Source of the DNA: Neoconidiobolus thromboides FSU 785
Lineage: Eukaryota > Fungi > Entomophthoromycota
Length of the DNA stretch: 64,000 nt
Assembly: GCA_025603075.1 (NCBI GenBank)
Contig: MU626354.1
Location: forward strand, 1 to 64,000
Direction: 5' to 3'
A program made the position numbers and the translations under genes. Of this stretch, positions 3,921 through 60,017 are shown one piece after another. Below the pieces are notes generated by a model, which was given only the letters and a program-made list of their open reading frames with translations, had not been told where the DNA came from and did no database searches. Each line of letters opens with the position of its first letter. Position 1 is the stretch's first letter.

Positions 3921-4019
3921 GGGGATGTATTTTTAGGTTTAAGAATTTTACTAATAAAATTTCCACTCAAATAGTGTTTAAAAGATAGAAAAAATGATGA
4001 AGCCAAAAAAAACATTCCC
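3921..4019 (+). mobile_element. MITE copy 2 (left half of inverted dimer)
   Basis: GGGGATGTATTTTT...AAAAAAACATTCCC, ATAT on both sides. Confidence 0.92.
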
Positions 4020-4023
4020 ATAT

Positions 4024-4121
4024 GGCGATGTTTTTTTGGCTTCATTACTTTTTCCATCTTTTATGTGTTATTTGAGTGGAAAAAGTGTTAGTAAAATTTT
4101 CAAATACAAAAATACATCCCC
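4024..4121 (-). mobile_element. MITE copy 3 (right half of inverted dimer)
   Basis: GGCGATGTTTTTTT...AATACATCCCC; shares ATAT 4020-4023 with copy 2; ATAT at 4122-4125. Confidence 0.92.
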
Positions 4122-12129: not shown

Positions 12130-13638
12130 ATATATAATAAGATTTTATTCTTAACTCTTTAAAAATTGACGTTTTAATAATTTCGTCAACATAGTGATTG
12201 AATCATTAAACTGAAGGTTCAATAAATAGTATTAAATCATTTAGAATTAAAATACAAAGCTTTTTGTAATAAAACATTTTTATAATTTGAGATCTATGTT
12301 TAAACCATAAACTTAATATATACAAGTTTAAAAGCTTAGTTAAAAGTAAAAATAAAATTTCTTAATTTATTTTTATCTATTTCCTATATAGCATGAAATT
12401 TTTAAAAATTATTAAGTAAAGCTGGACAAAAAAAGGTTTAATATAGGTTATTTAAATTAAGCAAAAAAGTTTACATTTAATGCTTAATTTGCATTTTTTT
12501 GCTAAAAATCAAATTAAACAAATTTTAAACCAAGTTTAAACTAACTTATATTTAAAAATAAATGTTAATAACTCAATAAAATATTAATTATTTATAGCTT
12601 ATTTTTGTTATTAATAGTATAGCTTTATATTTTATTATATGGGGTTGTCTGAATTAGTTTCATTATTTTATCCAATTTTTGAAAAATTTTGTGTTTTAAA
12701 AACTTTGCTTAAAATTCTATAAAATCATATCTTTATTAAAATAAAAGTACCCGGACACAGTTCTAAATCATTGTATTATAGTTTATACTGTAAGTTAGTT
12801 GAATTTCTACTAGATCTTAAATACACGTTTTTATAAAACTTTATTGAGAAATATTTATTATTGACCACTTTATAAGCAACATTGCAGATTTGTTATCAAA
12901 TAAATAAACTATTTTAATATTATAATTACATTATTAACATATTCCCAATTTAATAAATAGCTGTATGGGAGGGAGTGGTTAGCCCCAAAACTATAATTAA
13001 CCATCCCTATATAGTGCAAGTAATAATAGTTTTTACATATTATTACAGTTGCTTGTTCTTTGACTATTTATTAACTTAGCTATTAATAACTTAAGTAATA
13101 ATAACATTTAATAAGCTATTTCTATCATTCAACAAACTACTTACTTGCTTAGTAAATATCGAAATTTTTAAATTCTCTGTTATCTTCGTAAGGTAAGCTG
13201 GGATCGATCTTTTAATTTTTCTATTTTCTATAGACTCTATAACTTTAATTGGAACTATATCGCTTTTTTTTGATGTATCAGATACTGGATAACAATGTAG
13301 TTTATTGTTATGTTTAATAAAGTGTAAATACTTCTTAATTCCTTGCATCTCTATTATTCTTTTTATGTTTTTGTTTGTTTGATACTTTTTAAAAATTATA
13401 TCTGTTTTCCTATTATTAACAGTCGAGTTATTAATTTTATTATGCTTGCAAATAAAAGCCTAAAATCTTGAAATTAATTGATTAATGTCTTCTACTTTAC
13501 CTAATGCTTCAGAACTACTTTTCCATTTTGAAAGGTTTCCAATATGTCCATCAACTATACTTTTTCCATGATGCTCAGCAAAAAAATTAAGATTAACATT
13601 CAAACTACTATTTATTTTATAAATTTCTTTAAACATAT

Positions 13639-13735
13639 GGGGCTGTTTTTTTTGGTTTCATTATTTTTCCATTTTTTAAGCACTATTTGAGTGGAAAGGT
13701 TGTAGTAAAATTCTTAAACAAAAAAATACATCCCC
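13639..13735 (-). mobile_element. MITE copy 5, inserted in the transposase
   Basis: GGGGCTGTTTTTTTT...AATACATCCCC, ATAT/ATAT; removal restores CAT TAT ATG TTT AAA. Confidence 0.95.
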
Positions 13736-14480
13736 ATATAATGTAGGAACTCTTGGGATCTAAAATGATTTCCTGTATCTGCCCATATATTAATTTTTGT
13801 AAACTTTTTAAATAAAAGCTCTGTAGAGATTAAACCGATTAAACAATCTCCTGCATATGCTGAATTATGATTCAATATTTCAGATAAATAATCAAAGTAA
13901 ACTTTGCCTATTGTTTTATCATCTTTTAAATATAATACACCAAAGCCTAATACTGATATAGCTTGTTTGTTATAATGGTCTAGATTTATTGAATTTGGTT
14001 TTGTTCCTATTTCCATATTTTGTTTAAAATCTAAAATCATTATACAACTTCTATTATTTAATTTTTTAATAGTCATTAAATGTGTTTTTTTGAGTACCAG
14101 CACAGGATTTATTTAATTTGTATAATTTTTCTTCTTCATTGAAAATTTGATCTGTCTCTGCTTTGTTTTCAAATAACTTTTTTCTAATTGTATACTGAGC
14201 ACATATATTACATATATCTGTTTTTCTTGCTGCATTTTTGAAATTATTTGGTATATATTTAAGAAATGTTGATCTAGCTATCCCCCTATCTTTTGAATCA
14301 TTAAAATATTTACTATATATCATTCTTCTACTTTTATTTAATATATATATTATCTGATGAATATTTACTATTGTTATTTTTTTTATTAAATCTTGATGAA
14401 ATAGTTGAATCATTTAGTAAATATTGTATGATAGTTTCAATTTGGTCATCTTTAATTTTTTTTGTATTTTTAATAATAGG

Positions 14481-14690
14481 NNNNNNNNNNNNNNNNNNNN
14501 NNNNNNNNNNNNNNNNNNNNNNNNNNNNNNNNNNNNNNNNNNNNNNNNNNNNNNNNNNNNNNNNNNNNNNNNNNNNNNNNNNNNNNNNNNNNNNNNNNNN
14601 NNNNNNNNNNNNNNNNNNNNNNNNNNNNNNNNNNNNNNNNNNNNNNNNNNNNNNNNNNNNNNNNNNNNNNNNNNNNNNNNNNNNNNNNNN
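14481..14690. other. Assembly gap (210 N)
   Basis: Run of N inside the transposon; reading frames across it are not interpretable. Confidence 1.
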
Positions 14691-15137
14691 TTTATTATAA
14701 AATTCCATAAACCTTGGGTTGTTATAAGTAGCTTTTAAAATTGATGTAAACGAATTACAATGTTTATATTGTGTACTCCTCCCTACTGTATTAAAATTTT
14801 CAAAAATCCCATTTCGAAGTTTAATTATGAAAGTTTGCATTTTGTTTTTATTTCAACAAAAAATAAAGTCAAATAAGTGTATTTATATAATTATATAATC
14901 ATATAGTTATATATTATATATCTATTAAATATCTAACAGAACTAACATAAAACATATAGTTAGGAAAATTAGCTATTTAAGAAAAGGAAACAATTAAAAT
15001 AAGCTTTAAGTAGAGAGATTCAATTTTAGGCTTTTTAGATTTAACTATCACATTAGGCACAAATTTAAAAATTTAAAAATTTAAAATTTGGATTAACTTC
15101 TAAGTAAATTCTCAAATCAATTCGGACAACCCCATAT

Positions 15138-15237
15138 GGAGATGTTTTTTTTTTGGCTTCATCACTTCATCTTTTAAGTGCTGTTTGGTTTGAATGGAAA
15201 AATTATTAGTAAAATTCTTACACAAAAATACATCCCC
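15138..15237 (-). mobile_element. MITE copy 6, abutting the right TIR of the Sola-like element
   Basis: GGAGATGTTTTTTT...AATACATCCCC; left ATAT (15134-15137) is the transposon's own TSD; right ATAT at 15238-15241. Confidence 0.92.
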
Positions 15238-16175
15238 ATATGTTTTTAAACTATAAACATAGTATACTTTTTTAATAAAATACTATAATTATTTTAATAA
15301 AAATTATATAATATAATATATTAACTAATAAAGTTTTATTAAAAATAATTTTATATTTAAATTATAATAAATAACCAATTTTAACTTTTAAAATCCTAAA
15401 CTTCATAAAGAAAGTAAAGAAACTAGTTAGCTAAAAAATTATTTTTTGTTTTCAATAAGAATACAAAGTTAATAAACTAGTTTTAAAACTTTTGGGTGAA
15501 AATTATAAAAAAATAATAACTTATTTATAAAATTATTCTGTATAAGCTTAGAAAAAATGAAATTAATTAATAATTAGTTTAAAAATAATTTATTAAAACA
15601 TGATTTATAAAAATTTATGTCAAATAACATTTTCTATCATATTAAAAATAAATAGAAAATTTAAACACATTTGATGCATTATTATAATTATTAGATTTTA
15701 AGCTAAATAGTTGCTAAATTTGAATGTAACTTATTAAAGTTAAAAACATTTTTCCACTTATATTTGTTTTTTGGGTTTAAAAAACAAAAAAACTTTTCAA
15801 TTTGGCTTTTTATTTATTTTTGTCTAATACACCAATTGCTAATTATTTTAATAATCAAACCTATGTTTACTATTAACTATAGCAAAAAAACTTTAATTTA
15901 GATAAGTTAAATTTTGTTCCTTTTCAAATCTATGCGATTTTAAAACCAATCAATTCGTTACAATACGAAACTTTGCATTTTTATTGACCAATAATCCATC
16001 AATAATTTATCAAGCCAAACTCATCACTATCTTGTGGAAACATTAAATCAAACTACTAATTTTTAATAGTACCATGTGAAACCCAAAGCTTTAAGCTTCC
16101 AATTTACCAAGGAAGCTAAGTTCTTAAATCACAAATTAATTTGGAATTTTATTTCTTTTACAAATAACGGTAAAA

Positions 16176-36667: not shown

Positions 36668-36764
36668 AGGGATGTTTTTTTTATTTTATTACTTTTCTAT
36701 TTTTTAAGCGCTATTTAAGTGAGAAATTTGTTAGTAAAATTCTTAAATACAGAAATACATCCCC
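36668..36764 (-). mobile_element. MITE copy 10
   Basis: AGGGATGTTTTTTTT...AATACATCCCC, AAAT/AAAT flanks. Confidence 0.92.
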
Positions 36765-37338: not shown

Positions 37339-37431
37339 GGGGATGTGTTTTTGTGTTTAAGAATTTTAGTAACAATTTTTCCGCTCAAATAGCGCTTGGA
37401 AGATGGAAAAAGAAGTCAAAAAATATCCCCC
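37339..37431 (+). mobile_element. MITE copy 11 (left half of inverted dimer)
   Basis: GGGGATGTGTTTTT...AAAAATATCCCCC, ATAT/ATAT. Confidence 0.92.
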
Positions 37432-37435
37432 ATAT

Positions 37436-37534
37436 AGAAGTGTTTTTTTCGGCTTCATTATTTTTTCCATCTTTTAAGCACTATTTGAGTGGAAAACTTG
37501 TTAGTAGAATTCTTAAACACAAAAACACATCCCC
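37436..37534 (-). mobile_element. MITE copy 12 (right half of inverted dimer)
   Basis: AGAAGTGTTTTTTT...AACACATCCCC; shares ATAT 37432-37435. Confidence 0.92.
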
Positions 37535-59919: not shown

Positions 59920-60017
59920 GGGGATGTATTTTTTTGTTTAAGGATCTTACTAATAATTTTTCTGCTCAAATAGCGCTTAAAAATAGAGAAAGTAATGAAA
60001 TCAAAAAAAACATCCTC
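59920..60017 (+). mobile_element. MITE copy 16
   Basis: GGGGATGTATTTTTTT...AAAAAAAACATCCTC; non-palindromic ATAC/ATAC flanks. Confidence 0.95.

Follow-up and report, generated by a model that had tools for sequence, protein, structure and literature searches.

A decayed DNA transposon, most likely of the Sola2 type, and its associated miniature elements in Neoconidiobolus thromboides FSU 785

Sola transposons are, to our knowledge, among the least studied superfamilies of cut-and-paste transposons. Here we describe a Sola-type element in the first 64,000 nucleotides of contig MU626354.1 (assembly GCA_025603075.1; this whole stretch is termed the window) of the insect-pathogenic fungus Neoconidiobolus thromboides FSU 785. 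No Sola activity assay was found in the literature examined, and a literature search for Sola in Conidiobolus thromboides returned nothing. The closest described systems are the Sola2 elements of dictyostelids. Two of their transposases, labelled Sola2_DFa-2 and Sola2_PPa-1, were printed in the supplement of the Fanzor paper by the describers of Sola (Bao and Jurka 2013; PMC3627910), and the dictyostelid elements are flanked by AT-rich 4-bp target-site duplications of the form AWWT, with ATAT, AAAT and ATTT named (PMC3627910). The fungal survey in PMC5751038, to which N. thromboides did not belong, found Sola mainly in Rhizophagus (Sola1 and Sola3), and Sola2 once, in Aspergillus flavus, in agreement with an earlier sequence-only reading of the window that called Sola sparsely reported in fungi.

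The element lies on the minus strand at 12641-15133. It measures 2493 bp as assembled, including 210 N and a 101-bp insert that consists of a miniature inverted-repeat transposable element (MITE) and its duplication. We interpret it as a decayed copy of a high-copy Sola2-type cut-and-paste transposon of N. thromboides, and give this reading a probability of roughly 0.85. The transposase pieces were read by six-frame translation of the window. The features of the locus are as follows.

12637-12640, no strand: left ATAT target-site duplication; ATAT also flanks the second copy, on scaffold L001
12641-12660, plus strand: terminal inverted repeat GGGGTTGTCTGAATTAGTTT, the 3' end of the element in transposase orientation
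13094-13459, minus strand: the 122 C-terminal codons of the transposase, beyond the private stop; a tblastn search with the Smittium relative P0022 covers 13636-13211
13460-13462, minus strand: in-frame stop TAA, private to the window copy; nearly all others read GAA (Glu)
13463-13636, minus strand: piece D, with the third catalytic Asp (HHGKSIVDG, Asp codon 13552-13550)
13639-13735, plus strand: nested 97-bp MITE between the second and third catalytic Asp, with its own ATAT at 13635-13638 and 13736-13739
13741-14103, minus strand: piece C, with the first Asp (LDFKQN, Asp codon 14031-14029) and the second Asp (WADTGNHF, Asp codon 13779-13777)
14069-14413, minus strand: piece B, with the TDxCxxC motif (DICNIC, Cys codons 14212-14210 and 14203-14201); a 2-bp deletion at about 14072 lies between it and piece C
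14337-14480, minus strand: piece A' (PIIKNTKK...), in a frame different from that of piece B, with the frameshift near 14340-14365
14481-14690, no strand: assembly gap, hiding about 80 codons of the conserved N-terminal region (about 240 bp in the second copy)
14691-14840, minus strand: start of the transposase open reading frame, MQTF...FYNK, 50 codons, conserved in the second copy
15114-15133, minus strand: terminal inverted repeat GGGGTTGTCCGAATTGATTT, the 5' end of the element in transposase orientation
15134-15137, no strand: right ATAT target-site duplication, which doubles as the left duplication of the abutting MITE
15138-15237, plus strand: 100-bp MITE abutting the element, with its second ATAT at 15238-15241

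The assignment to Sola2 is carried by matches to the curated dictyostelid transposases. Exact strings of 23-29 residues of Sola2_DFa-2 and Sola2_PPa-1 are found in the database proteins P0110 and P0167 of Cavenderia fasciculata and P0089 of Heterostelium album, and these dictyostelid proteins match the window core (piece C) with E values of 6e-10 and 9e-11 database-wide. In pairwise comparison piece C is 36% identical to Sola2_DFa-2 (E 5e-19) and 35% identical to Sola2_PPa-1 (E 2e-17). Pieces B, C and D align collinearly to P0167 in BLASTP, with E values of 8e-6 (residues 282-338), 5e-19 and 1e-5 (residues 482-508), respectively. By eye, the comparison with the cores in the supplement of Majorek 2014 (PMC3985635) shows agreement with Sola2 in the DF.EN, S..L.HD and NFF...HGK motifs.

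The protein is a DDD cut-and-paste transposase (named for its three catalytic Asp residues) with an RNase H-like core. An exhaustive HMMER search of 1.8e9 proteins with the 121-aa core of piece C yielded 373 relatives; for 89 of these, E was 1e-10 or lower. The best match was P0001 (KAI9294929.1), a gene model of N. thromboides FSU 785 itself, and close relatives were found in Smittium and Furculomyces. Full-length relatives have 480-640 aa and share a series of motifs: TD.C..C followed by a conserved His, D[FY]K[EQ]N, S..L.HD, W.D.G.HF[RK] and E.HGK...D[GS]H. In 28 of them D282, D364 and G400 are invariant and D405 is nearly so; the same three acidic motifs recur across the 150 relatives listed of the 373. 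The AlphaFold model of the relative P0005 (predicted local distance difference test, pLDDT, 81) has the order b1-b2-b3-a1-b4-a2/3-b5-a4, which is RNase H-like, and puts the three Asp in their canonical places: the first on strand 1, the second directly behind strand 4 and the third where helix 4 begins. Its best solved fold matches are the IS21 transposase IstA and the catalytic cores of retroviral integrases; no solved Sola structure was among the fold matches. Pfam scans of the five open reading frame pieces and of the 28 relatives gave only noise and a sub-threshold DUF7869, and a word-indexed profile search with alignment A1 returned only 6 proteins. One family member, P0025, comes from a plant assembly (Thalictrum), where its contig measures 1.9 kb; contamination is its probable source. 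In P0004, the Furculomyces model, the core is duplicated internally.

The borders of the element are defined to the base. The left terminus GGGGTTGTCTGAATTAGTTT (12641-12660) and the reverse complement of 15114-15133 (GGGGTTGTCCGAATTGATTT) agree at 17 of 20 positions, and ATAT, which makes up 1.3% of the 4-mers in the window, stands directly outside both ends. The 15-nt terminal pattern has only these two sites in 64 kb, in inverted orientation, with 0.13 expected by chance, and a repeat finder recovered the same inverted pair together with its flanks (pair I12). The summed contig depth of the genomic run X1 rises from about 500-1200 to about 3e5 precisely at 12602-12702, a change of about 600-fold at the element borders, and drops again past the abutting MITE. 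The length of the duplication follows from ten MITE insertions in the window, flanked by ATAT in seven cases and by AATT, AAAT (36668-36764) and ATAC (59920-60017) in one case each. The AAAT and ATAC flanks are non-palindromic, so the duplication is 4 bp long and the termini begin with the G run. A 2-bp TA or AT duplication, possible with the palindromic ATAT, is ruled out by these two MITEs.

A second copy on another N. thromboides scaffold (L001:5520-7883) can be aligned with the window element over the full length, with 90% identity. ATAT stands on either side of this copy, its MITE site is empty, and it starts and stops at the same bases as the window element; copies extending beyond these termini were what the sequence-only reading had named as speaking against itself, and that check thus turned out in its favour. 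In the L001 copy the gap flanks keep their order, orientation and reading frame; the roughly 240 bp (80 codons) between them, at L001:5938-6177, match residues 47-121 of the relative P0002, in the conserved N-terminal region. Contigs of other copies extend into the gap with sequence resembling the L001 copy. Since the flanks are collinear and in frame in the L001 copy and other contigs run into the gap, the two sides of 14481-14690 are very probably continuous, as judged from these related copies; the letters and the frame at the window locus itself are unread. The L001 copy is also broken elsewhere. A degenerate MITE and an apparent tRNA gene are located just upstream of it (L001:4985-5085 and L001:5250-5330).

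The 53 bp at 12694-12746 of the window copy are missing from the second copy, and some genomic and RNA-run contigs omit 12679-12732. The 53-bp stretch is an indel polymorphism in the 3' untranslated part of the family.

The transposase gene of the window copy is dead. It has one frameshift, the 2-bp deletion, the private stop codon and the MITE insert, in addition to the assembly gap. Most of these lesions can be read against other copies. If the MITE is taken out together with one ATAT (101 nt), pieces C and D come to lie exactly in one frame; contigs without the MITE connect 13633 to 13735 (runs X1, X2 and X5), and the site is empty in the second copy. Position 13462 is C, giving GAA (Glu), in nearly all contigs of other copies and also in the second copy. 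The bases TT are inserted after 14072 in about half of the X1 depth and in all RNA-run contigs, and the second copy has both of them. The account of the sequence-only reading thus stands for the ends (17/20 repeats and a perfect ATAT duplication), for the minus-strand relic, in which CxxC, LDFKQN, WADTGNHF and HHGKSIVDGH were all found, and for a complete-ended Sola-type DDD element with 4-bp duplications, which the catalytic triad, the terminal repeats and the MITEs flanked by AAAT and ATAC bear out. The gap, which it had left to be closed, is bridged collinearly by the L001 copy over about 240 bp; the intact copy that it proposed to look for was not found.

One contig of an RNA-labelled library with a different organism label (run X5, record 19; 1226 nt) spans 12945-14246 of the window without the MITE at about 95% identity. 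It could represent transcription of another copy or DNA carry-over.

Summed depth reaches about 3-5e5 in the element and about 2.8e6 in the MITE, with about 500 in unique flanks; these are rough values whose ratios are sums over contigs and not true copy numbers. They suggest hundreds of element copies and thousands of MITEs, again as rough figures; the latter agrees with the density of about one MITE per 5 kb in the window.

The 11 MITE copies in the window give a 99-bp consensus with fixed polarity. MITEs and element have the same target, and seven of their eight outermost terminal bases are identical (GGGG.TGT). Counted from the 3' end of the element (the 12641 side), positions 17-40 match the same positions of the MITE consensus in register, with 87.5% identity. 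This end scores 22 end to end; shuffles give 8.5 +/- 2.7, and not one of 2000 attains that score. Most likely, the 99-bp MITEs arose by deletion within this family or a sister Sola2 family and are mobilised in trans by the transposase of that family. The window copy cannot be the MITE master.

Several MITE insertions are arranged unusually. At 15134-15241 the order is ATAT-element-ATAT-MITE-ATAT, with three ATATs around two insertions; the later of the two abutting insertions took as target the duplication that the earlier one had created. At 3921-4121 two MITEs of opposite orientation are joined via a single shared ATAT, again an insertion into a pre-existing duplication. A 196-bp element at 37339-37534 has the same GGGGATGTG termini and ATAT flanks; it is a MITE dimer or else a longer relative that is non-autonomous.

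Besides the nature of the depth ratios, a number of observations weigh against our interpretation. As to the family, the tie to the canonical Hydra Sola2 (DFAENY/DG.A.QYK/SHG) depends on the curators' classification of the dictyostelid elements and on motifs compared by eye; the spacing around the second Asp, also by eye, is nearer to Sola3; and DFK[EQ]N is present in all 150 relatives listed, which points to a distinct lineage within what is called Sola2. As to current activity, no intact family member was found among the copies and public contigs examined. As to the MITEs, their right end does not resemble the 5' end of the element significantly (345 of 2000 shuffles reach the score), and the two differ at terminal positions 5 and 9-16.

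These last differences also favour the alternative that the MITEs are moved by a separate, unseen autonomous Sola2 transposon with termini exactly GGGGATGT(A/T)TTTT, to which the window element is only a cousin. No internal homology between MITE and element was found beyond the ends, as such an origin would have it. The common 4-bp target, the shared terminal bases and the block at positions 17-40 with its in-register identity speak for the closer relationship, and the window showed no further transposase family that uses this target. We consider a separate mobiliser possible but less likely than not. The sequence-only reading had proposed this lineage as the master of the local MITEs. That proposal keeps the target, the terminal bases and the 17-40 block, and loses the other end, which is not significantly alike, and the window copy itself. 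Its view that the terminal repeats of element and MITE are related without being identical fits the bases that agree and those that differ.

The same reading had also suggested that Sola2 features combined with a Sola1 preference for AWWT may mark a distinct subgroup. AWWT is indeed cited as a hallmark of Sola1 (PMC3845634), the 150 relatives listed carry DFK[EQ]N and W.D.G.HFR and not the DFAENY and DG.A.QYK of Hydra and sea-urchin Sola2, and there is no Pfam family match beyond the weak DUF7869. However, Bao and Jurka already placed DFa-2 and PPa-1, which have the same signature, in Sola2, with AWWT, ATAT, AAAT and ATTT duplications, and these proteins are themselves significant matches of the window core. 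Both the enzyme and the target of the window element therefore match published Sola2 elements (PMC3627910), and the notion of a new subgroup with a Sola1 target and a Sola2 enzyme fails; at most, a known Sola2 sub-lineage is extended to fungi. A distinct subgroup of this kind is quite improbable. The locus is a new host record and a small extension of the known Sola2 sub-lineage, not a new subgroup or mechanism.

That the transposase belongs to another superfamily (Sola3, Sola1, Zator/ISAzo13 or piggyBac) is hardly credible: the spacing of E....FY.K...S and D-N-x-x-x-[FY] resembles Sola3 cores by eye, the ESM Atlas neighbours include DUF7869 and ISAzo13-type clusters, and piggyBac is likewise a DDD enzyme with 4-bp duplications, but S..L.HD and NFF...HGK, compared by eye, fit Sola2 and not Sola3, the Sola1 core motifs FDL.K, SDNCGGQN and GHTQS are absent, the Pfam domain of piggyBac (DDE_Tnp_1_7) is missing from the window pieces and ten relatives and its TTAA target differs from ATAT/AWWT, Zator/ISAzo13 duplications have 3 bp (PMC10045372) and not 4 bp, the Zator-1_HM and PF07592 cores lack any motif of the family, and the matches to curated Sola2 proteins are significant. 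Zator/ISAzo13, suggested by the Atlas neighbours, was accordingly rejected on duplication length and motifs. Against the Sola3 core motifs (D[YW][CS]QK, SDNA..YH, and GK followed directly by D), compared by eye, the spacing of the first and second Asp is similar, whereas the HD motif resembles that of Sola2, as does the H of HGK. At the motif level, the Sola1 motifs FDL[EQ][KQ], SD[NC]C.GQN[RK]N and GH[TS] (PMC3985635) are absent from the window protein and from the 150 relatives listed.

For our interpretation of the locus as a decayed Sola2 copy, we propose the following scheme. In an intact member, a single exon would code for a transposase of about 550 aa, with an N-terminal helical region, the TDxCxxC...H motif and the RNase H-like catalytic core. 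Zinc or DNA is the probable ligand of the TDxCxxC...H motif. Working like other DDD/DDE enzymes, the transposase would attach to the terminal repeats, which begin with GGGG, cut the element out and insert it again at AWWT sites (ATAT in most cases), with duplication of 4 bp. The observed anatomy, homology, fold, target duplications, copy multiplicity and lesions are the basis of this scheme; catalysis, DNA binding and cross-mobilisation are what it would add to them.

The locus gives the exact ends of the family, confirmed in two independent copies, and a proven 4-bp ATAT/AWWT target. It ties a very abundant MITE family to a transposase lineage and documents the link of the fungal copies to the published dictyostelid Sola2 elements. 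This helps repeat annotation of N. thromboides and related genomes, as Sola2-type relatives are also present in Smittium and Furculomyces. It would also guide the hunt for an intact, testable transposase, although no new mechanism is revealed.

We speculate further that the DFKEN-type Sola2 lineage could still be active in N. thromboides. The signs for this are the hundreds of copies and thousands of MITEs suggested by the depth, and the transposase contigs lacking the MITE that occur in RNA libraries. An intact copy, should there be one, would form the first tractable pair of a Sola2 transposase and its MITE. In that case repeated horizontal transfer would be suggested by the scattered hosts of the lineage, which range from entomophthoralean and harpellalean fungi through dictyostelids to animals, rotifers and cnidarians among them. 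Such transfer would have taken place among organisms that share insects, soil and water. We regard this broader picture as unlikely.

Among the known systems, piggyBac has a DDD RNase H-like enzyme and a fixed AT-only 4-bp duplicated target, as does the window element, but the target is TTAA and not AWWT, and no sequence or Pfam relation was found. Sola1 (Sola1-1_AP, and the insect Sola1 elements and MITEs of PMC3845634) shares 4-bp AWWT duplications and MITE derivatives with the window family. It differs in the motifs FDLEK, SDNCGGQNRN and GHTQS, which are absent in the window, and in its termini, GGACCG.... The Sola1 and Sola3 elements of Rhizophagus irregularis (PMC5751038) are also found in an early-diverging, AT-rich fungal genome, and belong to other Sola groups.

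Canonical Sola2 (Hydra Sola2-1_HM and sea-urchin LOC100887903; PMC3985635) has, by eye, a DDD core of the same size as in the window element, with about 84 residues between the first and second Asp and about 41 between the second and third, and shares the DF.EN, S..[LI].HD and NFF...HGK motifs. At the second Asp it has DG.A.QYK, with one residue more, in contrast to D.G.HFR of the window family.

The dictyostelid Sola2 elements, DFa-2 of Dictyostelium/Cavenderia fasciculata and PPa-1/4/5 of Polysphondylium pallidum/Heterostelium album (PMC3627910), have the same TD.C..C, DFKEN, W.D...HF[KR] and HGKS..D motifs as the window element. The core identity is 34-36%. Both have AWWT 4-bp duplications, including ATAT, and short terminal repeats that begin with G; the terminal sequences are GAGCATTT... 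and GTTAAATTT... in the dictyostelid elements and GGGGTTGTC... in the window element. The dictyostelid elements are chimeras of 10-15 kb with Fanzor1 and encode transposases of at least 888 aa, whereas the window element has about 2.4 kb, carries only a transposase (about 550 aa) and has a large MITE progeny.

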